Shown in pieces: positions 14,826 through 53,317 of a stretch of DNA of 64,000 nucleotides. This DNA comes from Lepidodermella squamata (lineage: Eukaryota; Animalia; Gastrotricha), in assembly GCA_047495785.1 (NCBI GenBank), contig JBLDXI010000074.1, forward strand, positions 1,302,001 through 1,366,000, in the 5' to 3' direction. A program made the translations under genes and the position numbers. The notes under the pieces were generated by a model. The model did no database searches. It had not been told where the DNA came from and saw nothing but the letters and a program-made list of their open reading frames with translations. How positions within the stretch are numbered: position 1 is the first letter of the stretch; each line of letters begins with the position of its first letter.

Positions 14826-14944
14826 GATTTGAAGATTTAGCAGGATGGGTACTCACCACAACGACGGGGCCAACGAGGAACTTGTTCATTTTCTATTGAG
14901 AGAAAATAAAATGTTGATAAGGGAAAAGTGAACAGTGAAAATTC

Positions 14945-16026
14945 AGATGTTACTAGCATTCGCGGACGATACTGCTTTATTATCGCAAGATTCGGAGAAA
15001 ATGCAATTGATTATAGATATTTTTGTTGAGGCGTGTGGACACTTGGGCTTGAAAATTAATGTTCCAAAAACCAAATTCATGAGAGTTAATAAAAATGACT
15101 GCAATTTACATTTACCTTTTTCCATCTACGGGCAGTACATTGAAGAAGTTGATGAATTCGTATATTTGGGAAGTGTTATCACGTCTGACGGCAGGTGTAA
15201 GGCTGATGTAAGGACTCGTTTAGAAAAAGGCAACAAAGCGTTTGGCGCTATGCGGAAATATATTTTTGGCAATCGATCTGTCCCGACTAAAGAAAAAATG
15301 AAATGTTTAAAGGGCGTTGTGGATGCGACTATCATGCATGGCAGCGAAAGTTGGACGTTAACTTCTGAGGATGCGAGGCGACTCGACGTAGGCTATATGC
15401 GTTATTTGCGTAAGATATGCGGAGTAACACTTAGGGACAGGATTCGCAATGAGGTCATTAGAAATATGTGTGGTTCAGAAAAATTTACATTCCAAATTGC
15501 TAGGCGGCAACTTCGCTGGTACGGGCACGTCGCTCGCATGGACCCCGTAAGGCTGGCAAGCCAGATGCGGTACTGGCAGCCGCCGGATGATACTTGGAGT
15601 AGACCTCGAGGGCGACCAAAATTAAGGTGGATTGATTGTATCAAAAAACATTTGAACAAAATAGGGATTAACAATTTTGAGGAGGCCGACGCCCTGGCCC
15701 AGGATAGAACTACTTGGAGACAAAAAATTCATAGTTATTTTGGTGAAAATGAAATATCAGAGTAAGGATGAGTTTTTGAGGTTGACGATCAGGATAGGTA
15801 GCTTGCTACCGGTCCTCCTCCGACACTCGGTTCGCTTGGCGTGAACAAAATTTACATCACGCCCGGCGAATTGGGTACACCGGAGTGAATTTTATTTTAT
15901 CATTTTTCCTTCTCATTTTTGTTTCTTCGTTTCTGTACTTGAACTCAATTGTTTTTGTTACGTTATTGTTGATCAATTAATGAAGGAAAAGATAAAATAA
16001 AGAAAATGCTATGCTATGCTATGCTA
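14945..16026 (+). mobile_element. 5'-truncated non-LTR retrotransposon, RTE clade (RT C-terminal part, 3' UTR, tandem-repeat tail)
   Basis: ORF 14935-15765 carries LAFADD, LKINVPKTKFM, FVYLGSVI, LRWYGHVARM, RPRGRPKLRW.D and AQDR..WR. The tail is (ATGCT)4 at about 16006-16026. It is flanked by the 9-bp direct repeat TGAAAATTC at 14936-14944 and 16027-16035. Confidence 0.93.
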
Positions 16027-26363: not shown

Positions 26364-27489
26364 TTATGAACCAAAAATGGATAGTTTCAATGCATATGTC
26401 ATGATCACCGTAATAATTGAGTACATTAGCCGGTGGGAGGCAGATTTATCCGGCTCGAAAGCGTACCGCTTCACTTTGCAAGCCTTCTCAACACTGACAA
26501 GCCAGTTGGACGAAAATTGCCGGCACATTCCTTCTGAGTACTCATCAACGAGCGAATCCTGAGGGTCTTCCATGCATTGGATGCAAACGTGGCTTTTCGC
26601 GCAGAATCTTGCTGTAGGTAGATGCTGCGTTGCTTCAGGATACAACCCACATTTCCCACTAGTTTGATTATACCGAGCTCCTTTGGCCACACACATCCGT
26701 CGCGTCTCAAATGTATGCCAAACATCGTCGATGATTGTTATCTCAATTTCGTTGGCTTTGAACGAATCACATACGCATCTGTTATTCAAGCAAGTCTGTA
26801 AGTTGGACCATCCACCAGGCAAAAATATGTTCCCACTCGCTGTACATTCACTTGTCCGCCGGCAAAAATCGCCAATTTCACGCTGAACACATCTTCCTAG
26901 ACTCTGGTCGAATTTTTCGAATAAATTGCTACAGACGCATTCATCATCCACGCATTTCATGCCAAAGCCTGGACAGCCGTCCGTAGAACAGTTCGAACTC
27001 AAGCCGCAGCCATTGCCAAACTTTTCGTAAATGCAAGTGACTTTTTTGGTTTGAAGATCACATTTAGCAAGAGGTAGAACTATGACTTCATTTTCGCCAC
27101 CAGTGCAAGGTTCGCCAACAAATGACTTGAAAATTGCTTAAGAAAAAGCGCATTGAGTTTGGGACACCAAGAAAAAGGATTAAAACATACTCATTTTACA
27201 TTTCCCTGAAATTACGGTGGCACAAGGGTGACAGGAGCAAGCTTTAGTTCTGCAGGCTGGTTTCTAACAAACTCTGTTTCAGATTAACGACCGCAAAGAG
27301 TTCGGATTACTTACAAGACCGGATGAAAAATCTTGACATTGCGAGTCTCCGGAGCAAGTGCTATTACTCAGGCAAGCTAATAAAAGGCTTGGGTGCTGAA
27401 AGAGGTTGCATTAGTGACTTACATTCGAAAAATATGCGCTGACCAACACTTAGCTCAACATGGAACAGTAACAACAAAATTAGGAGCAT
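26364..27489 (-). CDS. Cys-rich EB-module-like surface protein, paralogue 1 (signal peptide, hydrophobic C-terminus)
   Basis: Exon 1 MLLILLLLFHVELSVGQ, two small Cys-rich exons, then a main exon (GEPCTG..EVIVLP.A.C...GNGC...GRCVQREIGDFC) ending KSASHRLMYSIITVIMTYALKLSIFGS*. Confidence 0.75.
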
Positions 27490-27584: not shown

Positions 27585-28958
27585 TCAGTATAAATGCTTC
27601 ATATATTCTGTAAAACGTAGAAAAAATGCAAAAAAATTGATGGGATCAAACATAATTGTGGTGTAGTTAGCTGAGCTGCTGATGAAAATACGAACCGCTT
27701 GACTCCACAAGCCTTCTCAACGCTGGGTAGCCAATTCTTCGAAAATTTTCCTAAAATTAAAAGTAAGACAAATAACTGAAAAATGTGGTAGTAAACTTAC
27801 GACATTGGCCATTCCGGAATGTGTTGAAATGAGGTAAGTCGGCATCTTCAGGACAACCGGCGCAAAAATGGGATTTCTCACAAAATCTCGAGTCTGGTAA
27901 ATACTGATGTTGTACCGGATCGCCTAATGTGCATTGCTCCGTGACAGCCAAATCAACGATTGCATCTCGAATGACGCACAACTTTCGCGTTTCAAACGTG
28001 TACCATTCCGGATTGAATACTGTAACCTGCGTCTCGATACTTTTCGTCAAATCACACGCGCATTTGCCAGCTATTTCGTCGCAGATTAGGAAATTAGTCC
28101 AATCATGGGGCAGCAGGAAGCTGCCGTAGCCATTCGCTGCGCACTCTTCGTCCATCGTGCAATTATCACCGATTTGCCGCGGCGCACATCGTCCTTTGTT
28201 GTAGTCGAACTTGTCAAAAACGTTCTTGCAGACACACTTATTGTCGCGACAGGTAAGGCTAGTGCTTTGGCAGCCTTCTTTATCGCAGTTCGACCCCGGA
28301 CCGCATCCATTTCCTTGCCGCTCAACGCAGGTTACCTTGTTGGAGAGTGGGTTGCAGAAAGCAGTTGGAATCGTGATGATTTCATACGGACTCCCAGTAC
28401 ATGGCTCGTCAAGTGAAGTAATGTATGTCACTGAATAAGAGTGGAAACTCAAAAATTCAGGAAACTGCGATATGCGATATTTGATATTTTTTTCTACGTT
28501 AGCTTTCGCTGAGCATGTTCCTGCTCTGTGAGACTTTTGCCGATATTCCAGAAATTCCTTGGCAGTGGGTACTCCCAGTGTTTGAATCGATTTAGTTGAT
28601 ATATTCGATGAAAACCTCACCTTTGTTACAGGATCTACCATCCAAAGATAGCTTGTAGCAAGGTTTACACATGCACGCATTTTTCTTGCATATTGGTTGC
28701 TTTTTAAAACATGAATAGTTAGTCATTTAGCAAAATTCTTATTCCGTGATTACCAATCCGGTGTATGTTTCACAATACGCATTCGCTACGCAACTTGAAT
28801 TTGTTTGGCAGATTCCTATATTGGGAATTTTCGGAATAAATTACAGAAAAAATAAAATGCGACTCACCTCCGACTCGGCTCTGCGATAAGCACGATGATT
28901 GAAAGCAAAGGTAAAGAAAACAAATTATTAATCCAACTAGGTTAAATCGATTATTCAT
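27585..28958 (-). CDS. Cys-rich EB-module-like surface protein, paralogue 2
   Basis: Exon 1 MNNRFNLVGLIICFLYLCFQSSCLS (donor GTGAG). Main exon has EIITIPTAFC...GNGCGPG...GRCAPRQIGDNC. Last exon RKFSKNWLPSVEKACG...; the stop position is approximate. Confidence 0.75.
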
Positions 28959-29213: not shown

Positions 29214-31106
29214 TTACAGCGACAAAGTGACAATGAAAACAACGGTAGTTATGACGTTGGCAAACTGGCGCCATTTAGCCGCCCGAGTGGTTGATGACGC
29301 TCTCGAGTAGATGAAATGCTTGATTCCGCACGCTCGCTCCTCACTAAGCAGCCAATCAGGATCGTACTTTCCTGAAATCAAGAGGCATGCTAAATTTACG
29401 CACAATGTGATGTAACAAGACCAAAGGCTTGTCTCAAAATTCAAAATGCAGTGGTGATGATTCGAAATTTGAAATCTAGTTTCGATTGATGAATAGTTAT
29501 CTTAGTAGCGCATGTAAAGTGAATTAAGCTTGCGCGATTTCAATAACACGGCTTAAAAAATGAGATGAGAAAAATGAGAAAAAGAGTGAAATCTCGAAAA
29601 TTTCCTATAAATTGATGCTGCGATCTGAAATCGTTTGCAGGAGAAATTAGAAGCTCATTCTTGAAAAATGGCTGTAAGAGGATTCTCGCATCATCCTTTT
29701 AGGCGTGAATACAGGTGTGAAGTAAACATTGCCATCTACGCATGCTCATTATTCAAGGACGTTCCAGAAACCAACCGGAAACTCCTATGTTCTAGAAGAC
29801 ATGCACATGTCTGCTGATCAACATGTTTAGGATGGTTAGTGGTTAGAATGCACAATTGGTTGCTGTTATGCCCATGTCATTAGAGCCTAGAGCCAAGAAT
29901 TGCAGTTTTACTTCATCGATGAGACTCCTGTTTTCCCTATCCAATAAAGTGTCCTTCTCAAAATCGGGAATGCGGAAATCTTACGGCATAGTCCATTGCT
30001 GAATCCGTCGAAATCTGTCCGGCTCCATTCGTCAATGCAAGTGAAGCAAATGTAAGCTTTTCCGCAAAAGCGCGAATCAACTAGATGCTGTCGTTCTTCT
30101 GGCTGCAAAAACCGTGTACACACGCCGTTCGTCAAGTCAACCGAAGCCCCCTTAACAACACACATGCGCCTGGTTTCGTAAACTCGCCACTCGGAGTTGA
30201 AAACTGCGATTTGCGTCTCAAAACTCCGCTGCATGTCACAGACACACCGGCCTCGGATGCAGAGTTGAAAATTCTCCCAGTCTCGAGGGAAAGTGTCGTG
30301 ATTTGTCCCATTTCCAGCGCAGTCACGGTGGGAGGAACAGCTATCGCCAACCTGCCGCGAGATGCATTTACCGCGGCTCATGTCGTAGTACTCGAAATCA
30401 TTCTTGCAAACGCATTCATTTTTCACGCATTTCAGATTCAAACCACGGCAGCCGTATTCGCGGCAATTCTGGCCTGGGCTGCAGCCGTTTCCTTGAGATT
30501 GAACACAGACCACCTGTTGCAGTGTCAAGCTGCAGTAGGCATTAGGAATGGTGATGACTTCATCGACATCGCCGGTGCAATAAGCTCCAAGTTTCGTAAC
30601 ATAGCGCACTAGGTTTTAAATAATGAAATAATGGCAGGAGGCGATATTGGTAATAACCTTACATTTTTGACAAGTTCTCGTTGAAATATCCATTCTATGG
30701 CAAGGCTTACAGGTGCAAGCCTTGATTTCGCATTTAGGTTCCTGATGGGTCGAAATTTCCTGATTTCTTTGATTGATTTGAAAACTTGACTTACAAAACC
30801 GCTGAATGTTTCGCAGTAAGAATTTGCAGTGCAGTTGGCGTCGACTTGGCATTCTGAACATGAGATAATTTAGTTATAGCGAAAAATAGCTGAGACATGC
30901 GAAGCTGTGGGAAAATGGTGGGAAAGAGTTTGCAATAGAATAATAGGGAAACAATTCTACAAATAATGATTGAGGTCCTACAATCAATTTTGCATTCATC
31001 GTCAAATAGGAAAGATCTATTGCTACAAAATCTTACCATCCATTATTTCTTGACAAGACGCGAATCCCAGGTGAATAGAAAGTAGAGCAAAAGCTAGCTT
31101 TATCAT
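29214..31106 (-). CDS. Cys-rich EB-module-like surface protein, paralogue 3
   Basis: Exon 1 MIKLAFALLSIHLGFASCQE. Main exon about 30610-29985 (EVITIPNAYC...GNGCSPG...GKCISRQVGDSC). Last exon 29371-29214 RKYDPDWLLSEERACG...VITTVVFIVTLSL*, homologous to the paralogue tails. Confidence 0.75.
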
Positions 31107-31487: not shown

Positions 31488-33875
31488 ATGCGATTGAGTC
31501 TAATTTACGAAAGAGCGAGACGATCGCACAAGTTGTACCCGATTACTGCCTGCCTAGCTATCAGCTTTTTCCTGATTATTCTTGCTAATTACCGGTTAGC
31601 ATCTGAGCCTAATGAGTCGAGATTTTCACCCTTTCCAGACGAATCTATCCTCGCGAAACAGAAACCACTCAAGAACAGTGCAGCAAGCCTGATTGCCGAA
31701 AAGCCAACCCCTCCGAACGTAATTCTGCCACCAAATGTAGTCTTAGTCCCAATCGTCCGGCCAGAATCATCCTACGCCCTTAAAGTTGCAGTTCTTATCG
31801 TGGCGATGAATCTGGGCTCCATGGAGGAGGCGTTTAACGTCATTCTATCAGGCCATGCATTCTTTGAGAGCGAACTAGGCAACGCCTATGCGACTTACTA
31901 CGTTTTCATGAACGAAGATGGCATTTCTCTGAGTATCATGGAGAACCATTTGGGCTCAGATCTCTCGAGGCGCGTTAAATTAGTCTTTATCGGTGACAGA
32001 GACCTTACGCAGGCTTCATACGACGACGCTCCGCTGAGATGTACGATTTACCTTAAATCAGAGCTTCTGCTAAGGTTTAACAGGGTAACTATTGATTACA
32101 AAACACTTTCTCTTCTATTCAAGACTCTAATGAAAGACATAACTTTGAAATTAGTAATGAAGCTTTGTTTGAGCAATTGCCTCTGATAATATATGAAGAA
32201 TTTGCACTTGATTTTTGTATTTCAGACCTACGACATGATATTTTCCGTCGACATTTCCATGCGATTTCGGGCCAAGTTCACTAAGGAATTGGAAGACAAT
32301 AATGCCGGCTTCCTGGCCAGGACGAAAAAGGCGAAAGAGCCTGTTCTGAAGCTAACTCTACCTCAATCAATTTTTGCGTTGGAACACCCTGATTACATAA
32401 CTTCCTCTCACGAGCTCGATGGGGTTGATCAAGAGGAAGCGGACTTGGAGAGGAACAAAGTACGCCTGAAATTCCCATTCGAAACCTCAAATCGTAAATC
32501 ATGTGGCTATGTGCCCAAATCAAGAGCTGAGAGCGTTAAATACTACTACAGCAGCTTGGTTTTTGGCGGGAAACCAAACGACTTCCTATCAATGTGCAGC
32601 AGCCTCGCCGACTGTCGCCAGCACGATTTGAATATCGGAATTTTCTACATTGACAACAATGAGATTTACCTGAATGCATACCTTCACAATATCACGACGT
32701 CTTCACCGCTTTCGAACGGCTTGGACAAGATTATCGGGCCGAAGAGTGCGCAAACTACAGATGATGAGATTAACTATGAAAATTATCGTAAAAGCCTAAA
32801 ACAATTTCGGGTCGCCCTAAGAAGTGTTCCGGAAAGCTTGAATTGCAAAAAGCTCGAACCCCTGACAAGTGATTTCTTGTCGAGTCTTGCAGATGAAAAC
32901 GCGACGGTGGCTGAACTGGAGTTCAAATATTTTGCCCCAATAGCAGAGCTGTTGAAGACTTCAAAAAGCGACTGCCCTGTTAAATTTCTCATCTATTCGT
33001 GCAGCCAAAATTATTGCGGGAATTTGAATGCCCAAATTCGAGGTATGGTTACTGCGGCCTGGCTAGCTATAACATCAGGTCGAATTTTCAACGTCGACGG
33101 GACACAAAACTCGAAGTTATCGGACTTTTTCGAATTAAACAGCCATTTCTATTCTGGGATAGATCATGAGGTTTACTCTCAGCATTTTAACATTGCGGCC
33201 AACAAATCACGAAGGGTCTATCTCAAGAGCAGCCTGGTGAATCTGACGCAAAGATTCAATTCTTTGCAATCGGTGACAGATTTCATCGCCCTTCCGAATC
33301 AAATTGCATCCGCCAATCAATATTTCAGCTCAGCAATTCTGAAGAAGGTCTTTGGACGGCCGAAACAAAGACTCATCGATTTGTTCAACCGCTGTGTGGT
33401 GAATACATCCCCTCTCGACTGGAATTCCTCTTACAAAATTGGAGTCGAGTTAAGTAAATCGGATTCAGTGGACATTAATTGCTACACAAACGAAATTGTT
33501 CGAATTTTTAGCGCAGAGACGATAAATGAGCGGACAATTGTGGTTTTTGTTATCTCTGACCATGAAGAAATACCCCGGGACTTGCAAACTGCAATTTTAA
33601 ATCATTCTTACACTGCAAAATCTGAAAAGCTAGTGGGAGTGTACTCAATCGGCCAAGCGAAAAGTTCAAACATGTTGCCAAATGCGGATCGACATGCGAA
33701 GGATACTCCTGACGATAAGACTGAAGCTCATCAATACCTCAATTGGCTGGCATTTACTCGAATGGATAGACTGATCATCGCAGAACATGGCCTCGGCGAA
33801 ACTGCGGCTCTCTTTTCACTCCGGCCTGCCTTTATACTAGAAAATAGCCGGAAATGTGCAATTTCTTTGTTATGA
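31488..33875 (+). CDS. Type II membrane fusion protein: degenerate GT6 (ABO-type) domain followed by a degenerate fucosyltransferase-like domain
   Basis: Exons 31488-32084 and 32226-33875. N-terminal TM anchor. GT6 part: KVAVLIVAM, YDMIFSVDISMRF, EHPDY, FPFE, YYYSSLVFGG, NEIYLNAYL. FUT part: CPVKFLIYSC..YCGNLNAQIRG..LAITSGRIF, YKIGVEL, VFVISD, MDRLIIAEHGLGETAAL. AATAAA follows the stop. Confidence 0.85.
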
Positions 33876-34072
33876 GTCGTGTTAATAAACGCATGGATGA
33901 AATTTGCTCAGGCTCATCTTTTCTAGTATTTAAATGCTTGAGCTACATTTTAGTTTAGTTTTCTCGCGGTGGAGAGAAAACAATAGCTAACGTTCGTTGC
34001 AGCTACGAAGTACTTAATGAGTTTTTTGGGCTTTTTGGCTATATATGTGAATATTTTAGCATCAGCTGCTCC

Positions 34073-35095
34073 ATGGTTATAATTTCTATATTTTCTCACC
34101 GCTTATCGGCGAAATGGTTGAAGGCTCTGATAGTTTTAATATTTGTCGGCTTAATTTTGCTAATGATCTCTGATAAGCCAATGAATTCAGAAGCTTTGAA
34201 TTTGAAGCTCAAAAAACTCAAAAACCAAAGCTCAATGGATTTCGGCGAAGTAGTGAACATTGGTTTTTTAATCATGGCAACTAGCCAGTACGCTGCTTTG
34301 ACACCACGCATGATTGAATCAGCCCGAAAATACCTCAATTTTACAACACACGAAACTCGTGGTACAAAACATCGGATATTTTACTTTATTTTCACGGATA
34401 AGTTGGACGACATTGCGAATGGTAGCGATGTGCTCGGGATCTATCAGAAGCGGCTCAGTTGGCCTTCAGTCACCTTATTAAGAAACTCAATCTACCTAAA
34501 TTCAGCGAATATTTACGAGGAACTGGTACAGAACTAAATTAGTACTTTATCCGATTTACATATAAATTCTTGGTTTCAGAGCATTGATTATCTGTTTTCA
34601 ATAGACTCAGATATGCTTTTTGAGTCTCACGTTGGTTCGGAGATCCTAGGCGACCTTGTTGGAGCCCTGCATCCTGGCTACTATATGTACCACAACAACC
34701 GAGATTTTCCATTCGAGCGCCACTGGGGCGAATCGTGCGCCGCTATTCCCGAAACTGACACGAGAGCAAATCGCTACTTTTACGGTGCGATTTTCGGTGG
34801 GAAGCGGCTGAATTTTCTGGAGCTATGTTATGCGACTACGAAATGCATAAAAGAGGACATGGACCGAGGCGTTTTAGCCGAATGGCACGATGAGTCTCAT
34901 TTGAATCGATATTTTTTAGACCATCCGCCTACTTTGGTACTCTCACCAGCTTACTGCTACCCCACAATATATTCGCTGCCGTTTGAAAGAAAAATTGTTG
35001 TCCTGGCAAAAGACCATGATGCGATTAGAGGAACGCGGTCTATGAGGAGATTGCTTTCAGATTTGTATTGGTATTTGAGGAGCTTCGTAGTGTAG
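34073..35095 (+). CDS. Glycosyltransferase family 6 (ABO/alpha-1,3-Gal/GalNAc transferase-like), type II membrane
   Basis: Exons 34073-34525 and 34580-35095. Motifs IGFLIMAT.QY, YFIFTD, WP..TLLR, DYLFSIDSDM (DxD), GDLVGALHP, FPFER, YFYGAIFGG, AEWHDESHLNRYF, LSPAYC, KDH..IR. Confidence 0.92.
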
Positions 35096-35287: not shown

Positions 35288-36826
35288 TTACCGAAAATCA
35301 ATCTCCGACTTAAGCCCACTGTACAACTCGAATAAAGCTGAGCAGTCAAACGTGGGACTGTTATTGCCGAGGTTATTGTCCATTTCTTGCTGCTTCCAAT
35401 GCGCAAATTGCCATGTAGGAGCCTGGGAGTATAAAGAAGCTGTGTGGCCATAACTCGACCGGCTGATGAGCAGCATGTCGGCCTGCGTCAGAATCGTCCA
35501 ATCTACAAAAACCTTAGCGAATTCGAACCAAGCATTGTCAGGTTGTGTAACGTCGGATCTATCCAAGTGCTTCAACGGCAGAATTCGATTGGTGTCGAAA
35601 ACTGTCGCGCTCATGTTGCTGAGATCGCTCTTGAGTTCCTCAAGTGCCTCAACAGAATCACCGGTCAAGAAAATTACTTTTTCCAACTTGGGATCGATCA
35701 TTGAGATCAGACGGCGAATTTTCGAGGTGAAGCAAGAGATCTGTGAATTTTCGACCCTTGACCCACCTTCGCCCCAGGTCGATCGCAGGGTTCGAATCTG
35801 AACCCCGATTTTGACTGCGCTACTCCAAGATTCTCCGTTCAGTCTTGTTTCGTTTTCAATTACTTGCGAAATCAAATTATCAAGTCGTGAAGTTCGCTTT
35901 CCAAGAAGTAGTCTCAGTGCAACGGATGCAATAATCGAATAATCTGTCGATGCATTTGCTGTAGCTGGAAATAATCGCTGAAGATTTGCGAACGACGGAT
36001 TTTGGAAGATCGACTCCAAAGCTTTTAGGCGATTGGTCGTTCCATCCCAAGAATCCCAATTTTCCAGGCGGTTTTTGACAAAATTCGGATCCGCAAGGTC
36101 TCTGATCAACTGATTACCGTCGTCATCAATAAGTCGCCAGTAATTTCGGATTTTCAATGACTTCGTTCGATGTTCTTGATACAGATGTTCAAAAGCGTCT
36201 TTCCTGGTTGTGTAGAAGCCATCGTAGAAACCTTCGTTCACTCGAAAGTATTCAGCAATATTGACAGGCTTCGCCCAGTCGAGGTGGAAAATTCTATTCG
36301 AAGCCACTGCTGTGAAGAATAGGGAGGCGACGCCTTTGAGCCTATCGCCGAAGCCGCCGCAGGATACCCCGTTATCACAAGAATAGGCAACAAACTTGAA
36401 GAAAACACAATATAACAGTCCATTATTTCTGACAGAATATCGACTCACTTTCAGCCGAGATTTGCCTGGATTGCTCTCGAGCGATCTTGTGATATTGCGG
36501 TAATAAGAATTTCTGAGGCTTGAAATAATTTTCTCGATAGATTTACGGCGAATTTCCGCCTCGGAGATTAGATCTCTCAATTCGGAAGGCGTAATTGCGA
36601 TGTGAATCCTAGAACGTTGGTTAGAGCTCAATTCACTTGCCTCAATGATGGGAGAAATTCCGAGTGAGATTCCTCCGATTGTAAAATTCGATTGGAAGAG
36701 ACTCCGGGAGAAAAAGATACGCCCAAACAGAAAGAATCGTAGATCAATAGCTTCCAACCGCAGCAGAACGATGAACGCGAGAATTAAAAATGGCAAAATA
36801 AGCCAATGCTTTGTTGAAAGTTGCAT
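35288..36826 (-). CDS. Fucosyltransferase-like protein (alpha-1,2/alpha-1,6/O-FUT superfamily, GT37-like motifs), type II membrane
   Basis: Likely ATG at 36826 (MQLSTKHWLILPFLILAFIVLL). Motifs CGGFGDRLKG, KIGVQIR (motif I), IFLTGD (II), FVDWTILTQADMLLISRSSYG (III). Probable in-frame 54-nt intron near 36449-36396. Confidence 0.85.
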   Translation of the reverse strand: MQLSTKHWLILPFLILAFIVLLRLEAIDLRFFLFGRIFFSRSLFQSNFTIGGISLGISPIIEASELSSNQRSRIHIAITPSELRDLISEAEIRRKSIEKIISSLRNSYYRNITRSLESNPGKSRLKVSRYSVRNNGLLYCVFFKFVAYSCDNGVSCGGFGDRLKGVASLFFTAVASNRIFHLDWAKPVNIAEYFRVNEGFYDGFYTTRKDAFEHLYQEHRTKSLKIRNYWRLIDDDGNQLIRDLADPNFVKNRLENWDSWDGTTNRLKALESIFQNPSFANLQRLFPATANASTDYSIIASVALRLLLGKRTSRLDNLISQVIENETRLNGESWSSAVKIGVQIRTLRSTWGEGGSRVENSQISCFTSKIRRLISMIDPKLEKVIFLTGDSVEALEELKSDLSNMSATVFDTNRILPLKHLDRSDVTQPDNAWFEFAKVFVDWTILTQADMLLISRSSYGHTASLYSQAPTWQFAHWKQQEMDNNLGNNSPTFDCSALFELYSGLKSEIDFR

Positions 36827-36863
36827 GTAAATAATGTCTAATCGATAAAAATGAATCCCAAAG

Positions 36864-37880
36864 TTAACCAATTTTTTTTGAAATAGTTATTATTCTAGGA
36901 TCAAGAGGTAGTTTCCACTTCTCAGGATAACAATAAGCTGGGCTCAGTGCGGTTGTAGGTTTGTGCTCCACAAAATATCGATTTAAATGTGATTCCTCCA
37001 TCCATAATGCTGTATAGTGGTCTTCAGTCATAAAGTCTTTCCTAGCACACTGTGATATGTGGCTGCATAGGTCTAAGAAATTGCTTCGTTTGCCTCCGTA
37101 AAGTGCGCTGTGGAAGTATCGCGTAGCTCGTCTGTCTGTTTCATTGATTGCAGCGCAGGAATCAAAATTACGCTCGAAGGGAAGCTTAGCGTTTTCATTA
37201 ACCCGATAGTAACTGGGATGCAGAGCGCCTACCAGGTCGCCGATTAATTCTCGGCCAACTTCTGATACGAACAGCAAATTAGCGTCCATAGAGTAGAGGT
37301 AGTCAATGTTCTGTAAAAATATGTGATCACGGCATTGCTGGGATTATATGAATTTTGACCTAACCAATTTCTCGTATAGGTTTGTAGAATTGAGGTAGAT
37401 GCCACATCGCCATAGATTCCCTTTCGGCCAGCCAATGTAAGGCTCAAGCACCCGGACGACATCGTTCACATTATCGATGTCTTCCGGTCGATCAGTGAAT
37501 ATGAAAAAGTAGACCTCAAACGCTCGACCGTCTTTCTCTGATCTCGAATGAAGATTCAAATGGACGCGAGCTGAATCAGCCAAACGATTCGACATTTTAG
37601 CGTACCAGCCGGTTGCCATTATCAGAAAGCCAATTTTAAAAACTGTTACTTCTAGATCCTTTGTAGTTGAGGAGCTCACTGTTTTTGTATTGAGAGCTGA
37701 AGACAATTTCGGCTTCGAAACAAGAGTACGAATGGTAGTGGAGTTGATATCGGTTTTCTGATCCCTTGACAACGAGAAAGCAGCCAAAACAGCCAAAATG
37801 ATCAAAAATATGACAAAAAGCTTGAAGGAAGACAGCCGTCTGTTAATATTAAGTGCCATGACTTCGTCTGTAAGAAGCAT
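36864..37880 (-). CDS. Glycosyltransferase family 6, type II membrane
   Basis: Exons 37880-37365 and 37310-36864. Motifs KIGFLIMATGWY, YFFIFTD, DYLYSMDAN, GDLVGALHP, LPFER, YFHSALYGG, WMEESHLNRYF, LSPAYC. Confidence 0.9.
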
Positions 37881-41227: not shown

Positions 41228-42340
41228 TTAGCATAACAAAAGTATCGACGTTGTCATAATCATCGACGGAATCAACGCGTTTGAAGCTGACTTCTTGGCT
41301 ACAGCGGCCTGCATTCGAGCCATGGTAGTCGTAGTTGGTGCAACAAAAGTGAACTTAATTCGGCCACATTCTTCACTCGATCTCGCCAACGGCTTAGTAT
41401 AAGCCCCTGCGAAAGATTCAATATTTTCACGAATATGATCAAGGCTGAAACCTCCAACTTACGGCATGTTCCACTTAATTCGTCATCAGAGCATCTGTAG
41501 CAAAAGGTGGACTTAGCGCACAGCCTAACGTTTGGTTTGTCAGTATTTTCATCGCCAGCTATAGTGCATTTTTGTCCTTTCGCTAAATTGATCGTGGCGT
41601 TGCTATGGGCGCAAATCTTCCTGGTTACCATAGCCGCATTGTCAGGATCAAATGTCGTTATTTCAGTCTCTGAGCCTCTCGAAGTATCGCAGGCACATTT
41701 CCCACCCGAGCACATCAGAAGACTGTCGGGAACTTTGAATGTCGACGAGCATTCCTCGTCATTCGAGCACTTGTCGCCGATTTGCCGTGCGACGCATCTG
41801 CCAATGTTAGGATCGTAGTAGTCACTGGAATACCTGCACGAGCATGTGCCATCGGAACACCATTGCCAAATTCCTCCGCCGGCGCAATCTTCGATGGAGC
41901 TACATAGTGCTTTGCCAGCGCTGCAACCGTTCCCATCGACGGTGAAACGACACGTGACACGTTTAGCGGCAGGGTCGCATATCGCATTTGGTATTGTGAT
42001 TATTTCATTCGATTGGCCGCTGCACGTGCCGCCCAAATTGCTCACATAGCTCACTTAAGATCGAGAAAAAAGCTCAAATGAGAGAAATTAGGTTTCGATA
42101 TTTCCAAAATTCGGGATTTAAGTCACGTTTAAGGTAATTCAATCGATGTCAGTATGGTAGAAAAACGGTCATCCCGCTATCTATCGAATTCAGTTTATGC
42201 TATATAACAACTAACAACAGTAATTTATGCTTTATCGAAATTGAGAAATCAGAAATCGAGAGATCACGATAATATTTGAAGTAAAATCCCACCTGCATTG
42301 CTGCAAGACTTGCTAGTGCGAAGCCAAATTGAGCAGTCAT
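41228..42340 (-). CDS. Cys-rich EB-module-like surface protein, paralogue 4 (GPI-signal-like C-terminus)
   Basis: Exon 1 MTAQFGFALASLAAMQ. Main exon EIITIPNAIC...GNGC...GRCVARQIGDKC. Last exon ...EECG...TTTT...KKSASNALIPSMIMTTSILLLC*. Confidence 0.75.
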
Positions 42341-42890: not shown

Positions 42891-43554
42891 GCCGGCGTAT
42901 GTTTTTTCGCCGGTGAAATTTTAATACGCCGGGGCGCCCACAATAATAATTATGTTTATAGCTGCAGCTTTGAATAACGGAAATAGTATATTGTAACTGG
43001 TGTAGAGCTACCTAAGAACTAAAACAACCCGAAAATATTTCATTTTATACTTTATTTCAGGCTTTACTTTATCAGCGATATCATTGAAATTCAAATCAAA
43101 TAAAGTTTGACATTTTTCACGATATTCGCATTTTTCGGTCGGTTGTCACCTTCTGAGCTCTCGAAAATTGGCAAGCCGTCGATTTGTCCAGATTTAGTCC
43201 TCAATCGCACTATTTTTCGCTCGCCGGCGTATGTTTTTTCGCCGGTGAAATTTTAATACGCCGGGGCGCCCACAATAATAATTATGTTTATAGCTGCAGC
43301 TTTGAATAACGGAAATAGTATATTGTAACTGGTGTAGAGCTACCTAAGAACTAAAACAACCCGAAAATATTTCATTTTATACTTTATTTCAGGCTTTACT
43401 TTATCAGCGATATCATTGAAATTCAAATCAAATAAAGTTTGACATTTTTCACGATATTCGCATTTTTCGGTCGGTTGTCACCTTCTGAGCTCTCGAAAAT
43501 TGGCAAGCCGTCGATTTGTCCAGATTTAGTCCTCAATCGCACTATTTTTCGCTC
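42891..43554. repeat. Apparently exact 332-bp tandem duplication covering the 3' end and 3' flank of a GT6 gene
   Basis: Units 42891-43222 and 43223-43554 both begin GCCGGCGTATGTTTTTTCGCCGG and end ACTATTTTTCGCTC; no differences seen by eye. Confidence 0.93.
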
Positions 43555-44508
43555 GTACGGCAGAGCAGTGAACGTGGCTTCTTCTGGATAGCAATAGCTG
43601 ACGTTTAAAATCCTACTCGGTCTTGTAGGCCTTTCCAAAATCTGTCGATTGATGTACGCTTCATCCAGAAGAGGTGCTACGTAATTGCCAGCGTCGTAAA
43701 TGTCGTGTTTCACGCATTCGGAAATTTTCTGGCACAATGCCAAGAAGGTTTCCCGCTTTCCGCCGAAAATTGAGCTTGTGACGTAGTGCTTACCTTGAGA
43801 CATGTAATTCTTCAACGACGCACAGCTTCGCCTTGATTTCTCGTAAGGAAACTCGTAACGTTTCTTATTGATATAACCGGGGTGATCTACAGCGAATAAA
43901 TCTTGCAAGAGTTCCGCGTCAACTTGAGCAACAAAACGCATGTCGGCATCTAATGAAATGAGGTAGTCCATTGAATTGAGATAATCGGAATTTCTTGCAA
44001 GTTTAACATAGCTTGAGCAGCGGAGTAGGGAGTCGAAAGGCCATCCAAGGCGATTTTGCCTCACTACGACTATATCTTGGCCTCGAGGCAATAAATGCTT
44101 ACTCTGGCGATCGGTAAAGATGAAAAATGTTATGGATGACTCGTTTGAGACTAGAAAATGTTGTCTCGCCGAGGCGACTAAGGCTTCGGTTTGCCTCGCG
44201 TATTCCTCCTCAACTGCGTAGATCAAGATCCCAATTTTTCGGTTGATTTTTTCAGAGGTATATTTTTGAAAAATCGGAGGTAAAGACCTTCCGTAACGCT
44301 CCAAGTCCATCGCCCGGTCATAGGCCTCCATAATAGCTGCATCATGCTCAGTGAACTGGTCACTTGTGTCAAAACGGGTAACCAGCGAGTTGAACACATA
44401 TTCAGCTACTGACAGGAAAATGATCAGGACGGCTCCGATGATGAGAAGTAAACAGGAAATGAGGCTGAGGACTGGTAAAATCTGGCAAGATCTGCGACGT
44501 AGATTCAT
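43423..44508 (-). CDS. Glycosyltransferase family 6, intronless, type II membrane
   Basis: Single ORF with TM anchor and motifs KIGILIYA, FFIFTD, LGWPFDSLLR, DYLISLDADMRF, HPGY, FPYE, YVTSSIFGG, LLDEAYINR, SYCYPE. Confidence 0.9.
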   Translation of the reverse strand: MNLRRRSCQILPVLSLISCLLLIIGAVLIIFLSVAEYVFNSLVTRFDTSDQFTEHDAAIMEAYDRAMDLERYGRSLPPIFQKYTSEKINRKIGILIYAVEEEYARQTEALVASARQHFLVSNESSITFFIFTDRQSKHLLPRGQDIVVVRQNRLGWPFDSLLRCSSYVKLARNSDYLNSMDYLISLDADMRFVAQVDAELLQDLFAVDHPGYINKKRYEFPYEKSRRSCASLKNYMSQGKHYVTSSIFGGKRETFLALCQKISECVKHDIYDAGNYVAPLLDEAYINRQILERPTRPSRILNVSYCYPEEATFTALPYERKIVRLRTKSGQIDGLPIFESSEGDNRPKNANIVKNVKLYLI

Positions 44509-44943
44509 TTTGAATAATATCAATAATATTCAGCGATGAGAAATGATCTCAGGCTAAATAATATAGTTATTTGGCTCGCGAGTAGCGTTATTACACTGAT
44601 GCGGCTAATTATGGCGCTCCGTTGATCCAAAATCAATTGATATAATATCGCTTATAGCTTTATGACACGCGATAAGGAATCAGCGTATAGCATCGAATCG
44701 GTACATGTGGCTAAAGACTAAAGACTTGATCGACATTGATCTACGTGCAGCAATAGGGATGGGCCTGTACATACCTATATTTAAAAACCGTATTAAAACA
44801 TATCGTTAGCGTCGTTGAATCACTCGGATTTAGGCTTGTTTACGTCCGGTACAAATTCACGGATGACAAGTAAAAATCGGTTTTTTAACGTATGAATGGA
44901 GAGGCAAAAAAATAATGAGTTAAATGGTGAGCGCTGCGTAAAC

Positions 44944-47233: not shown

Positions 47234-48973
47234 ATGAATTACGTCAAGATAAGCGCCGCTGTCAGTTCGGTCGTACTCCTGATTTTCCACGTCATGGTCA
47301 CGTTTTATAACATGGACACTGGAAAACGCCGAGCAATCTCCGACGCTCTTTCAGGTCAAGCATCATCATCGAATAACTATGGCGGCACGCAGGATTCGTC
47401 ATCATTTTGTCTCGACGGCTCGCAGATGCGAAGCCCTCTAAATAGAATCGATTGGGCTCAGAAAGCAGCGAATGTCTTTGAAAAGAATTCGTTGAATATG
47501 CGGAAACCGCTTGCTGAAGTAGTTAGACATTACAGAGAGCCATACTTCAAGAAAATTCGGCATTCTATATTGGTATGTAATTAATTGCTCATTTTTATTA
47601 TTCTCAGCGATTAGTCGTTGACTGCCTTGCACCTTGCTTATATCCATTTTTATCCCTTATTCGTCGTTTTTTCGGACTGGTGAATCGGTTTGGACATGTT
47701 GAATATATCATGCGAAAAGTGTCTTCTCCTTTTATAGAATATCTGTTCATTATTTTAATAGAGCAAGGAGTGTAAGCCGAAGTATCTTGTTTATGAATGC
47801 ACCAGAGGCAGTCTATGCGGCGGACTAGGCGATCGCCTGCGAGGAATAGTAGGCCTTTTCTACCTCGCAATGGCCACAAATCGCATCCTTCACATCGTAT
47901 GCGACAAACCACCGGCAAAACTCGGAGATTTCTACAAAATTAATGCCGAGCTTTACTTTGACTCTTTCAATTCGAGTGGGCAATATTTGACTACAAAGCA
48001 GGCGATTGACATTTACAGGGTACGGCTGTTCAGAGCTCGGCGCAGAAGTGCTGCTTGGTATGGCTTTTTGAACGCTGACGACGAGCAGGGTTACATTGTT
48101 TTCGCTAAACAAATGATATCTAACCTAGGGAAGAATCACACAGATTACATCGGAGTTATTACTAACAGCTTTTCTGTCCTAAATGCTGCGTTCGAACAAA
48201 GTTCCGGAACCAATTTTGAGAAGGTATATTTGAACTAAACTCGTCGTCACAAGTCCTGATTAAATTGCATAATTTCATAACTATAGGCTACCTATTTTTC
48301 CTTCTTGATTTCAGCTGGTCTAAGAATACTGCTCAGCCATCCTAAAGACGTAATGTTACAAGCTCATGATGATTTGATCAAGTCATCATCCCTTACAAAT
48401 GCCGAATGGAATCGGTTATTTAAAATTGGACTGCAAATTAGGGGTGGCAAGTCGCAGTATGAAGATGTGGGTGGCCGGGTTGGAACTAAGAGAGAGGCAA
48501 GTGGCAGCAGGTTTTAACCTCAACACGTAAAACATACCGAATTTTCACAGCAAAATTGCTTCATTGACCAAATCTTTCAAACAATTTCAAACCATTCGTC
48601 GATTCAATCAGGCGAAAGATCGATTCGCGATTTCCTAGTTTTTGTCACAACGGATAATGAAAACCTGACGAATTACGTTACTACGATTCTAGCGACAAAT
48701 TACTCTATCAAGGCATTGAAATCGCCCGGTAATTCAATTCATTTGGACAAGGCCACGTCGGCAGATAGCGCTTCAAAAATCAAGCCGTTTCTCGACTTTT
48801 ACTTGTTGTCACAAATGGATGCGCTTGTTATTAGCCGAAGTGGTTTCGGAGAGCTGGCGTCGCTGGCAAGTCTCGTGCCAACCATGCGATTCAGAACGAA
48901 AGAAGAGGCCACGGGGCAAGCCCTTTGTTACTTTTATCCGTGGCGTATAAAGAATAACTTTATGGAGCGTTAA
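47234..48973 (+). CDS. Fucosyltransferase-like protein (GT37-like motifs), tandem copy 1
   Basis: Exons about 47234-47572, 47762-48222, 48287-48496, 48551-48973. TM anchor; CKPKYLVYEC...CGGLGDRLRG, FKIGLQIR, VFVTTD, FLDFYLLSQMDALVISRSGFGE. Confidence 0.87.
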
Positions 48974-49258
48974 CAATAAACATCCTTTGCTCAAATACTA
49001 TAATGATGAAGCCTAGTTTCATGGGGCATTAATTGTCAAAGACTTTGTGGTGTGGCGTATAACCGGCAGAATATTAAGTTTTGACTTATTGTAAAGATCT
49101 CTGCTACAACGTGGGACCTAGTAACAACTTGATAGCCAACCGCTCGATACTTAGTCCGTCGCTCTGAGTGCCGATCTCACTTGCATTGCTTAGAAGGATT
49201 GGTCTTCCGGCATGGTAGTCAAAATCAAAGAGTGAAGAAAGAGAACAGTTATAGAGAA

Positions 49259-50947
49259 ATGTTTCCCTTTCAGCCATGCCTCACTCTTGCATTTTCTATG
49301 CTACTACTCAGCCGTATTCTGTCTATTTTCATGAATATGGACTCAGAGACTGTTCTTGCTATGATCAGCTTCTTGACAAAGCATCCAATTCCCTTGAGTT
49401 CACAGAAGGACAGGTCCGGAATGTGCCTTGACGGAACTCCACTCGATCAGTCAATTCTGGAAGCCAATCAACCATCAATCAAAGTAGTTCTCAGCTACAG
49501 CAAACATTCCGAAAATGAAAGTAAAATCGTGGACTCGATGGTCAGGCAGATCGAAAAAAGCTATTTCAGCAAAATCTATTTCTCAATAATGGTTTGCCAG
49601 CTATTTGAGCCGATTTAATTTTAAATAAGTATCAAGTTTTCAGCGCGAATCTTGCCGGCCTAAATTCCTAGTCTATCGCTGTTCCAATGGCGATACTTGC
49701 GGTGGAACAGGTGATCGAATTCGTGGCATTACAGGACTTCTCTACCTTGCCATGGCTACCAATAGCATTCTTCACATTGCCTGGGACAAATACCCAACTA
49801 AACTAAGTGATTTCTTCATCAGTAACGCGAATCTTTACTTCTCAACCTTGCCGAAGCAAATGTTTGATGAAGCGGTGAGAAAATACGAAAAGAGGCGCCT
49901 AGAAGCTAGGCGAGGATACAAGTCGATGTTCAGGTTTTTGGACGACAGGGGTGAGCATACGTTCACCAAGTTTGCTGAAGAATTGATCGCAAACCCAAAT
50001 AAAAGTCCAGTTCGGTATTCCCAGGTCAATGCGAATATCTTGGTATCAATGAGCGCTGTCTTCCGGCCGATCTCCAACGACAACGAACAAGATCTCCAAG
50101 CGACCAAGATGTGGCGAAATCAGATTGTCTTCTTGCGAGAATATTTTCCAGAGATTTTTCCGACCGCAATGCAATGGGTAAATTCTAAAAATGTGTTACA
50201 ACTTCCTTCAACTCTCAATAATAATTTAAATAATTAATTGGATTTTCCGTATTTATGTATTGAATGTTAATTTTTTCAATAGGAAATCAGAGTCCCTCTC
50301 TTTATATCCGCTGCTTTGAGATTACTGTTCCAGCGGCCAACGCCCAGGCTGCAAAACGCTTACAACACTATCATGACCTCGCCCGGAGAGTGGAATCACC
50401 TTTTTAAAATCGGCGTTCAAATACGAGTAGGCATTTCGAAATACGAAAACGTCGCCGTTAAAGTAGGAACTTCCAGAGAAGTATTTTTTCTAAAAATCTG
50501 AATGTTCGCCTACTATAATTTTATCAGCTTTTAGATTGCTTTGTCAAGCAAGTGCTCGAAACCATATCGACTTTGAGTGACAGATCAAAAAACGAATTCC
50601 TAGTGTTTGTAACTAGTGACCTTCAAAATGTGACAGATTACATTACGTCGACTTTGGTAGCTGAGCATTCGATCAAAGCTTTTCAGTCACCTGGCGAGTC
50701 GATTCACGTCGACAAGATAGCAAAAGGTGGAGAGTCGCCAGATGAAGCTTCAGTAACCAAGCTTTTTCTTGACTTTTACTTGCTGTCTCAAATGGATTCG
50801 CTAATCATAAGCCGGAGCGGATTCGGTGAGATGGCATCGCTCAAAAGCCTCGCGCCTACAATGCGTTTTAGAAAGAATGAAGAGTCGAAAGTTCAGTCAA
50901 TGTGTTATTTCTACACATGGCGGTTGAAAAGCTTGGGCATGGAATGA
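49259..50947 (+). CDS. Fucosyltransferase-like protein (GT37-like motifs), tandem copy 2
   Basis: Exons about 49259-49591, 49644-50177, 50283-50480, 50528-50947. Motifs CGGTGDRIRG, FKIGVQIR, VFVTSD, FLDFYLLSQMDSLIISRSGFGE. Confidence 0.87.
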
Positions 50948-51545
50948 ATAAATAATGCTGTAGAAGTTAGAAGTTCTTAGAGACTGTGTTAAACCCAGAT
51001 TTTCAAAGGTGCAAGGTGCAAAGACCAATCTCCTGAGGAATAAGATTTTTGTATCGCAGTGATTAGTGATTTATTTCAACGCTATGTAATAAAACGCAAT
51101 GAATATTCGTGATAAGCAACTTGCATAGCTGTGGGGCTTCCCGCAGCTCACGACGGCTACGCATTTCTTTGCTTTTTCGATAAGTCCTTCAAGTAATGTA
51201 TAATAAGTACTTCGAGAAATCACACGAACGTTATTGCTGGAGTATTCATCAGATGAAATTCATTCAAATTTTAAATAGCGTAGTTGAATAGTTGTTGTTG
51301 AATGAAGGAATAACAAGCTCTATTTTTGTCGAAATGAATACTTGCGCTGAGCTCATTCACGAATGACGTGACCGTCAATATCCATGTAGTATATGCTCAT
51401 TTATTCATCCTAATCAAACATGCGGCTGCGAAGTTGCCGGTCTTCGGTGAGATACCAACCGCTCAGCCGATCGATTAATCATGCCAGCCAACACTACAAC
51501 GTCGAACAAATCAGCACGGACCGCTTCATTGTGCAATGCGACTTG

Positions 51546-53317
51546 ATGCAGCTAGCTAAATTGTCGATAGTCGCTGGATCTTTCCTCCTTATCCTTGGCA
51601 TGAGTCTGATTTTCACGAGCATGGATACGAATACGCGTATGGTCATGTTCAATTCGGTTTTGGGTCGAAAACAGCAAGATGCCTCGCAAATGATTGAGCT
51701 GCCTGATGAAGCTATGAGCCCATCCGCAGTTGAAGTCACTGGGGATAGTTATGTGAGCGGCTCTGAGATGTGTCTTGATGGGACGCTGCCAAAAACAGCA
51801 TCTACTAGCAATTTCTCTTTGGAAATCGACGTTATCTACAAGCAATACGCTAACAATGCTAGCGAGATAGTTAATGCCCTTGTGAAACGATTCAAAGACA
51901 AATATTTCGCTAAAATTCAGTATTCAATAATGGTGAGTTGAGTTTTCCTATGTTTCCAATCGGGGACTATTGTAGAAGCTCCAGCAACTTTTTTACATTC
52001 TCCTTTCAGCGCCGAAACTGCAATCCTAAATTTCTCGTCTATCTATGCTCAAATAACATTGTCTGCGGAGGATTGGGCGACCGACTCCGTGGTGTAATCG
52101 GCCTTTTCTACCTCGCAATGGCAACAAACCGAATCCTGCACATCTCATGGGAAAAATCACCTGCAAAACTGAGAGAATTTTACAAAATCAATGCTGAGCT
52201 GTACTTTGGAGATCTTCTCGGTCAGTCGCTCAACTATAACCGGGCGGTGAAAATGTACGAAATGCGGCTTGATAGAGCTAGGTCACGCTTCAACGCGTTT
52301 CGCTTCACGTTCTTGGACCGGGTCGATGAGTGGCGGTATATCAAATTCGCGGAAGGCCTCGTCGCTGATCCGACAGGCAACACTGCAGAGTACCTCGAGT
52401 TCAACACGAACAGCTTCATAGCAATTTCAGCTGTTTTCCGGCCGAGCTGTTTTGGTAACGAAACTTCAAAAGTTTTCAGACAAAATCAGTTCTTCTTTGC
52501 GGAAGAATATTTTTTCGACTTATTCCAAGCTGGAGACGGGGCGAGAAAACTAGTAAATTTTTATATTGAGCTCTCGCGATAATTCCTCATGAATTCAAAT
52601 TTAGGTTATCAACTTTCCAATTCTGGTTTCAGCAGGATATAGAACTTTGTTCAACCAACCGGAACGAAGGCTTCTTAGATCTTACGAAAGCTTTGTGAAA
52701 GGTTCTGTTGGGGCTTTCGTTGGTTGGAATCGCCTAGTAAAAATTGGTGTTCAAATTCGGGCTGGGAAAACTCAATATGAAGACGTAGACGGTCGAGTTG
52801 GAACGGAAATGAAAGTTAGTTACCTAACCCAGCTTACAGATACAATGTACAAGTTGCATTTCAGCAAAACTGCTTCATCGAACAAGTCTTTCAAACAGTT
52901 TCAAACAGCTCTTCTCCACTGCTGGGATCAGAGGTCGTCAACAAATCGACAAGTGATTTTTTGGTCTTCGTAACTGCGGACAATCAAAGTGTAACTGATT
53001 ATGTGACTTCGATGCTGATCTCGAATTACTCAATACGGGTTGTTCAATTCTCCGGCCATTCGATACACCTTGACAAAGTTGGCTCATCGGCTAGTGAATC
53101 GGAGGATGAAGCAGCTGTTAATAAACCTTATCTCGACTTTTACATATTGACGCAAATGGATGCTCTCTTGATAAGCCGCAGTGGCTACGGGGAGATGGCT
53201 TCTATTGCTGGCCTAATGCCAACTATCCGTTTCAGAAAGGAAGCTGAGGCCTCTAACAGACCGTTTTGCTATTTCTACAAATGGAGTTTACAAACTCATT
53301 TTATGGAGAGGAGGTAG
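51546..53317 (+). CDS. Fucosyltransferase-like protein (GT37-like motifs), tandem copy 3
   Basis: Exons about 51546-51932, 52010-52552, 52605-52814, 52865-53317. Motifs CGGLGDRLRG, VKIGVQIR, VFVTAD, YLDFYILTQMDALLISRSGYGE. Confidence 0.87.

Follow-up and report, generated by a model that had tools for sequence, protein, structure and literature searches.

The 64,000-nucleotide window analysed here (Lepidodermella squamata, contig JBLDXI010000074.1 of assembly GCA_047495785.1, positions 1,302,001 to 1,366,000) carries, at positions 31488-33875 of the plus strand, what is predicted to be one two-exon gene for a 748-residue type II (Golgi-type) membrane protein with two glycosyltransferase-derived domains in tandem, referred to below as the fusion gene. 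In the list of open reading frames (ORFs) the gene appeared as two plus-strand ORFs, 31488-32186 and 32193-33875, that share a frame, and splice sites were indicated by a donor GT at 32085 (AGG/GTAACT) and an acceptor at 32225/32226 (tttgtatttcag/ACC and likewise TTTGTATTTCAG/ACC). Removal of the intervening 141-nt phase-0 intron (32085-32225, GTAACT...TTTCAG) gave 748 codons with no internal stop, in agreement with the original prediction, made from this DNA by eye and ORF list, of about 750 codons free of stops and frameshifts. Since the sequence between 32085 and 32225 contains in-frame stops, it must be spliced out. Additional support for the gene model came from the 54-55-nt intron of the neighbouring GT6 gene at 34073-35095, which lies at the same position and in the same phase, just before the xDYLFSxDxD block, and from an alignment of the GT6 half with its paralogues that crosses the exon junction without a gap. 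The intron of the neighbouring gene (34525-34580, GT..AG) was seen spliced in sequencing run X1, which is probably RNA as judged from this joint and from its very uneven depth.

Exon 1 (31488-32084, 199 codons) encodes a short cytosolic tail, a signal anchor of 17 hydrophobic residues (ITACLAISFFLIILANY, 31542-31592), a Pro-rich stem and the GT6 N-subdomain with the blocks LKVAVLIVAMN, YYVFMNE and PLRCTIYLKS. The basic N-terminus followed by the 17-residue anchor, as judged by eye, is that of a type II membrane protein. Exon 2 (32226-33875) is a single ORF that runs, as originally predicted, without a break from a GT6 domain into a fucosyltransferase-like one. It comprises a remnant of the GT6 C-subdomain (32226-32684, supported by an NCBIfam Gltr_6 match, hhalign and motif alignment), a linker of about 100 residues that lacks a membrane segment (32685-32981) and a GT37-like fucosyltransferase domain with the stop codon (32982-33875, supported by homologues, profile and model). 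The end of the linker, ADENATVAELEF (32889-32924), was modelled as a long stem helix before the fucosyltransferase domain (model residues 10-31). A possible polyadenylation signal, AATAAA at 33884-33889, lies 9 nt past the stop codon and was identified from the sequence alone. The protein would thus read, from its N-terminus, as anchor, stem, truncated GT6 domain (GT-A fold), linker and GT37-like fucosyltransferase domain.

That the halves belong to two transcripts or two proteins, or were brought together by an assembly join mimicking a fusion, appears highly improbable. Such an explanation would suit the lack of any X1 contig over the intron or the linker junction and the presence in the same window of an unfused GT6/fucosyltransferase pair 37 nt apart, but it is opposed by the single ORF of exon 2 across both domains. 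The translated linker has no start codon from which a second protein could be made separately, and in the second half a Met first occurs past motif I of the fucosyltransferase domain; with no membrane segment in the linker, a separate second product would therefore be without both targeting and motif I. Coverage by DNA run X2 was even throughout the region, where a contig free of mismatches extends over 32379-32933; an X1 contig covers 32625-32797, and long homologues of similar architecture, described below, are likewise single ORFs of 616-802 residues.

Homology of the N-terminal half to GT6 was indicated by an hhalign comparison of residues 98-353, which derive from both exons, with an alignment of four GT6 genes of the window (98.8%, E 1.2e-16, 196 columns). 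Judged by sequence comparison this homology is secure, even though family scores were below threshold, both for NCBIfam Gltr_6 (E 1e-8, 35 bits, cut-off 250) and for Pfam PF03414 (14.8 bits, E 0.012, cut-off 25). Among PDB sequences compared with exon 2, the best match for the GT6 half was the bacterial enzyme BoGT6a, at a non-significant E of 0.37.

Wear of the GT6 half, which was assessed from sequence only, was evident at each catalytic landmark. At the DxD site, where four neighbouring GT6 genes read DSD, DAD, DAD and DAN, the fusion protein has D-I-S (residues 208-210, in the VDISM block at 32247-32261), which is neither DxD nor NxN; the corresponding blocks are SVDISM in the fusion and SIDSDM or SLDADM in neighbours. 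The WHDESHLN block has become DNNEIYLN (32652-32675), so that of W-H-D-E the Glu alone survives, while the HPDY (32385-32396) and VFGGK (32559-32573) blocks are retained. Two insertions, of 23 and 18 residues, interrupt the half. The domain stops after ...NNEIYLNAYLHN, with the alignment to paralogues ending at residue 353 (...AYLHN), and the SPAYCYP block and C-terminal tail of the paralogues have no counterpart in the fusion. This truncation and the survival of the catalytic Glu were not part of the original prediction. The four neighbouring GT6 genes have 48 invariant positions in common, of which the fusion keeps 23; when each paralogue was left out in turn, it kept 40-46% of the invariant positions compared with 64-84% for each true paralogue.

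In BoGT6a, NXN can stand in for DxD, W189-H190-D191-E192 are key residues, and diphosphate binding falls to Lys231 and Arg243, close to the C-terminus (PMC3961637). The truncated bacterial GT6 enzyme is, moreover, about the smallest functional GT6 (PMC3961637). In the fusion half, by comparison, DxD is missing its second Asp and WHDE its W-H-D, and the entire C-terminal segment responsible for binding the UDP diphosphate is gone. Because this C-terminal diphosphate-binding region is wholly missing, loss of donor binding by the GT6 half is likely.

The C-terminal half matched the stand-alone paralogue at 36826-35288 (minus strand) by BLASTP with E 2e-19. As single sequences, neither was recognised in searches of Pfam, NCBIfam or PDB sequences, and a word-indexed protein search with exon 2 gave no match. 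When the stand-alone paralogue was used as query in an exhaustive HMMER search, 260 relatives were returned; 84 of these were aligned (alignment A1), and the resulting family profile matched AtFUT4 (E 8e-19), AtFUT1 (2e-15), FUT8 (2e-10) and NodZ (5e-7), with motifs I-III in register with those of AtFUT1 and AtFUT4 in the printed profile alignments. An AlphaFold2 (AF2) model of residues about 415-748, driven by the family alignment, had a mean predicted local distance difference (pLDDT) of 79.6 and a predicted template modelling score (pTM) of 0.81. The top 50 PDB matches listed by Foldseek for this model were all fucosyltransferases, with AtFUT1 first (5kwk, E 5e-11), followed by FUT8, NodZ and POFUT1, and plant XG_FTase and cnidarian FUT8-like clusters of the ESM Atlas were matched with a template modelling score (TM) of 0.71. 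The half is thus modelled with the variant GT-B fold of fucosyltransferases, the outcome that the original prediction had made a test of its own proposal, and on sequence the family is best described as GT37-like.

Plant GT37 enzymes (Arabidopsis FUT1 and FUT4; Pfam XG_FTase) were the best structural match and have in common with this protein both the fold and a type II Golgi topology. Their motifs are in register with those of the family over an alignment of the whole domain (GGlGDR in the family and GLGNR in plants, kiGvQiR and KIGIQVR, SrSGFG and WSTFG). In contrast with the plant enzymes, members of this family come from animals and environmental eukaryotes and fall, as single sequences, below the Pfam threshold; GT37 is described as plant-specific. 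The fusion copy differs further from any plant enzyme in lacking the motif residues and in its position behind a GT6 domain. FUT8 and NodZ (GT23) and POFUT1 (GT65) have the same superfamily fold, and the motif-II Arg is common to them and the family, but their match was weaker than that of GT37, the fusion contains no SH3 domain, and the Arg is a Ser in the fusion.

Differences between the fusion and its relatives were most obvious in the motifs of the fucosyltransferase half. Motif I reads CGNLNAQIRG (33015-33044) as opposed to CGGLGDRLRG in neighbours, motif II reads KIGVELS (33435-33455) as opposed to KIGVQIR, NADRH (33681-33695) stands in place of HxDR, and in motif III (IAEHGLGETAAL, 33777-33812) IAEHGLG replaces ISRSGFG. 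Among the 84 aligned sequences the fusion was the sole outlier at G52N, G54N, D55A, R196S and S307H, it also carries R56Q (6 of 84) and H272N (2 of 83), and deletions in the fusion have removed a near-invariant Asn and a conserved Asp. In columns with at least 90% conservation the fusion keeps 5 of 14 residues (family median 13, next lowest 10), and in columns with at least 70% conservation 18 of 42 (median 36). All four conserved cysteines are kept, and an Arg persists in the AQIRG of motif I. The nearest relatives in the tree keep their motifs, so that motif loss is specific to the lineage of the fusion. On this alignment the half has lost the Gly-Gly-x-Gly-Asp-Arg of motif I, the motif-II Arg, a conserved His and the motif-III Ser. 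The R196 column coincides in the alignment with the KIGIQVR Arg of AtFUT1 and presumably corresponds to the motif-II Arg365 of FUT8, an equivalence suggested by the match of IGVQIR-type blocks. In FUT8, Arg365 stabilises the leaving GDP diphosphate (PMC12717137).

The motif changes reported in the original prediction (DIS, DNNEIYLN, GNLNAQIRG, KIGVELS and AEHGLG) therefore all hold, and its claim that both catalytic signatures are eroded can now be given a measure in each half (23 of 48 GT6 positions and 5 of 14 fucosyltransferase columns). As far as sequence comparison can tell, both halves are homologues of enzymes but lack the catalytic residues, which is one mark of a pseudo-enzyme.

An active enzyme with new chemistry was also put forward originally and gained no support here. 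One or both halves would in this case still transfer sugar, the GT6 half for example without metal, or the fucosyltransferase half with the help of different basic residues or from a different donor; we consider this very unlikely. It would be in keeping with the activity of BoGT6a with NXN in place of DxD (PMC3961637), this enzyme being the closest PDB sequence albeit at a non-significant E, and with retention of the Glu of WHDE, the HPxY and FGG blocks and the Arg left in AQIRG. However, the GT6 half is without the C-terminal segment whose cationic residues bind diphosphate even in the metal-independent enzyme, and the fucosyltransferase half is without an Arg that was found in 83 of 84 relatives and that is the presumed counterpart of the diphosphate-stabilising Arg of FUT8. 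Furthermore, the substitutions are common to no relative and thus do not point to a newly conserved active site.

Indirect evidence that the gene may have been retained despite these losses came from the reading frame, from allelic differences and from transcription. In a neutral simulation, which considered substitutions only and ignored indels, the ORF stayed open with a probability of 0.41 at 1% divergence, 0.18 at 2%, 0.012 at 5% and 0.0005 at 10%, whereas neutral replacement of 9 of the 14 invariant residues would need, by a rough estimate, about 0.5 substitutions per site. Since a neutral ORF closes far below the divergence required, most of the erosion would have taken place while nonsense mutations were still being purged. 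Two haplotypes were distinguished in run X2 and diverge clearly, with 105 differences in 5961 nt. The 14 differences listed for the coding sequence of the fusion were 7 synonymous and 7 non-synonymous, compared with 9 synonymous and 4 non-synonymous in a neighbouring GT6 exon, and the ratio of non-synonymous to synonymous polymorphism (pN/pS) estimated from these 14 single-nucleotide differences was 0.31-0.40 (P 0.03-0.07, depending on transition weight). Among the differences listed, all three indels between haplotypes fell at 33958-34006, in the 200-nt spacer after the gene, and none in the coding sequence. Contigs of run X1 were noted at 31815-31987, 32625-32797, 33169-33331, 33412-33519 and 33575-33727, thus touching both exons and both domains, at a depth of 2-5 compared with 9-32 on neighbours and 0.3 in an intergenic bin.

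Given the intact long ORF, the four of four conserved cysteines and the confident fold model, we read the fusion gene as encoding a retained double pseudo-enzyme, a surviving non-catalytic paralogue of the working enzymes that adjoin it, and consider this on balance probable. Of the corresponding claim in the original prediction, loss of both signatures is borne out, while retention is suggested by the ORF simulation, the cysteines, pN/pS and the thin X1 coverage.

Several results weigh against such retention of an inactive protein. The AF2 fold was driven by the alignment and is no proof that the fusion copy itself folds; deletions lowered model confidence at model residues 111-150 and 264-277, and the fucosyltransferase domain has a long terminal branch (1.86 compared with a median of 1.05), both of which fit relaxed constraint. 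The allelic test was marginal and based on the 14 differences listed. Depth in X1, which is RNA only by guess, was about 5-10 times lower on the fusion than on neighbours, and no X1 contig bridged the intron at 32085-32225 or the stretch 32833-33031 between the domains. Protein searches gave no orthologue with more than about 28% identity. With respect to loss of activity, bacterial GT6 enzymes function without DxD, by means of NXN, and the catalytic Glu is still present in the fusion.

The chief competing explanation is that the gene is a dying paralogue in a cluster with fast birth and death, its open frame and thin transcription being leftovers without function. We regard this as unlikely, though as a serious contender. 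It would account for the longest branch among near relatives, the deletions in the fucosyltransferase domain and the truncated GT6 half, for an X1 depth that is patchy as well as low, and for the fact that half of the listed allelic differences alter the protein. In addition, the cluster seems tolerant of damage, as suggested by an apparent stop at Tyr130 of the stand-alone fucosyltransferase paralogue in one haplotype and by a GT6 fragment at 43094-43249. On the other hand, neutral loss of 9 of 14 near-invariant residues, spread over at least four separate regions, would have closed the ORF many times over, and the four conserved cysteines remain together with many core residues. The lack of listed haplotype indels in the coding sequence, compared with three in the 200-nt spacer, and the pN/pS of about 0.3 also speak against decay.

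If the double pseudo-enzyme is indeed retained, the folded protein would still serve a purpose in the secretory pathway, where it would most plausibly bind a glycan or acceptor, or partner with and regulate the active GT6 and fucosyltransferase enzymes encoded alongside. Non-catalytic glycosyltransferase folds that hold or fold a partner enzyme are known from EXT1-EXT2, in which a two-domain protein has one dead domain, and from Cosmc, a pseudo-transferase chaperone. These belong to other families (GT47/GT64 and GT31, respectively) and at least one partner domain in them is active, whereas both domains of the fusion look dead. By analogy with Cosmc or EXT2, the fusion protein might be a non-catalytic partner dedicated to the active enzymes of the cluster, docking or holding them or their glycan product, although we think this specific role quite unlikely. 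Were it true, an invertebrate would build and control a blood-group-like Fuc/Gal(NAc) epitope with a double pseudo-enzyme forming part of the writer complex. More generally, a protein made of two inactivated transferase folds would, if functional, be a rarity and would help in studying the organisation or regulation of Golgi glycosylation enzymes, while a decaying copy would document fast turnover of a lineage-specific glycan toolkit.

The neighbouring genes are clear members of GT6, the family of human ABO GTA/GTB, bovine alpha3GalT and BoGT6a, and the N-terminal half of the fusion is homologous to them and shares their intron position; the fusion differs from GT6 enzymes in its DIS and DNNE sequences, its two insertions and the missing C-terminal segment that covers the substrate. 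In 2014, GT6 was reported absent from invertebrates (PMC3961637). In humans, the GT6 paralogues alpha3GT, iGb3S and Forssman synthase are inactive members of a birth-and-death family in which the active paralogue persists (PMC3961637). In contrast with the fusion, these human paralogues are single-domain proteins, mostly treated as pseudogenes or null alleles, and none is fused to a second transferase.

The original prediction that no animal protein of this architecture has been described was in part upheld, in that no mention of a GT6-GT37 fusion was found in the literature searched; the architecture itself is not unique. Relatives of 616-802 residues with a C-terminal fucosyltransferase domain and intact motifs (P0002, P0003, P0006, P0007, P0008, P0020 and others) were noted as single ORFs in environmental assemblies, on contigs of eukaryotic appearance. 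Four of these long homologues have an N-terminal extension with a GT6-like FFGG..C block collinear with GT6, residues 295-388 of the fusion matched residues 175-265 of P0003 locally (E 4e-5), and HMM matches on the FGG block of the extensions were weak but consistent. Pfam gave no match in the extensions, and a profile-profile comparison with GT6 matched the FGG..C block alone (14.6%). An AF2 model from a 10-sequence alignment had a pLDDT of 44.5 and did not establish a GT6 fold, and the ESM Atlas gave only generic GT-A neighbours for the extensions (TM 0.3-0.45). A GT6 origin of the extensions is, on these sequence comparisons, probable. What appears special to the fusion described here is a GT6 half that is clearly recognisable, together with a fucosyltransferase half that looks dead though it is intact in the other fusions compared.

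Two observations concern the surroundings of the long homologues. On an environmental contig of 5761 nt (L002), a second large ORF begins less than 300 nt downstream of a 645-residue homologue, on the same strand, and continues to the contig end. P0007 and P0020 appear from cluster data to share contigs, which suggests tandem arrays in other organisms too.

When the window was searched by tblastn with one GT6 and one fucosyltransferase-like protein, each proved to have five copies, which lie in the interval 31.5-53.3 kb. The GT6 copies were at 31488-32680 (plus strand, in the fusion gene), 34073-35095 (plus), 37880-36864 (minus, an intact two-exon gene), 40317-39372 (minus) and 44523-43423 (minus). 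The fucosyltransferase-like copies were at 32982-33875 (plus, in the fusion gene), 36826-35288 (minus, a single exon with its own membrane anchor), about 47780-48892 (plus), 49181-50947 (plus) and 51420-53281 (plus). Stand-alone GT6 genes were recognised by Pfam (E 5e-24 and 2.5e-31) and matched BoGT6a with E 3e-29 and human ABO with E 1e-26; a protein search with the 366-residue GT6 gene gave no match at E 1e-25, a threshold that was too strict.

A possible source of the fusion was indicated by the unfused pair on the minus strand (35288-37880), in which the GT6 gene ends 37 nt before the ATG of the fucosyltransferase-like gene and the gene order is that of the fusion domains. X1 depth was 0 in the bin that contains this gap (36813-37011) compared with 13-32 on the fucosyltransferase gene at 36826-35288. 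To give rise to the fusion, a pair of this type would have lost the C-terminus and stop codon of the GT6 gene together with the anchor of the second gene; such an origin is plausible, although it has no support from the tree. In the tree, the fusion fucosyltransferase domain grouped with P0004, P0006, P0009, P0010 and P0021 (support 95) and not with the stand-alone copies of the window, a placement that is unsure because of the long branch. Fusion of the two nearest stand-alone genes was accordingly rejected as a demonstrated origin, since the domain is placed with environmental sequences. A gene pair, a fusion and then a copy with both active sites removed would form a natural series leading to a pseudo-enzyme.

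Irregularities were also noted in other transferase genes of the cluster. In the second haplotype of run X2 (about half the depth), an A>T difference at 36437 would turn Tyr130 of the gene at 36826-35288 into a stop; this position lies among six clustered differences (36416-36437), and nearby differences that are not listed could alter the apparent stop. The otherwise good GT6 genes at 36864-37880 and 43423-44523 (both minus) also have non-canonical motifs, one with D-A-N for DxD and WMEES for WHDES and the other with LLDEAYIN for WHDESHLN. Just downstream of GT6 gene 44523-43423, the fragment 43094-43249 (minus) is 82% identical to the last 55 residues of this gene and resembles a partial duplicate. 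Introns in the window seem typically to be very short, with in-frame introns of about 50-60 nt in several genes (e.g., 47420-48990).

The transferase cluster is flanked and interrupted by four paralogous minus-strand ORFs (26364-27002, 27757-28680, 29908-30609 and 41299-42054) for Cys-rich, probably secreted proteins with the common blocks ITIPNAxC, RQIGDxC and FETRxxCV. Two plus-strand ORFs, 53658-54964 and 62389-63693, the latter a single ORF of 434 codons, encode proteins in which several hydrophobic stretches come after a long N-terminal domain. An Rfam scan of the window gave no match. Elsewhere in the window, a 276-codon ORF at 14935-15765 (plus) resembles the reverse transcriptase tail of a non-LTR retroelement, and the product of several exons at 1831-9613 (plus), perhaps a class V myosin, combines a long coiled coil with a possible cargo-binding tail. 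A complete REEP5-like gene is present at 11560-12087, and its best named relative, from Daphnia, is 57% identical, which points to a poorly sampled animal lineage.

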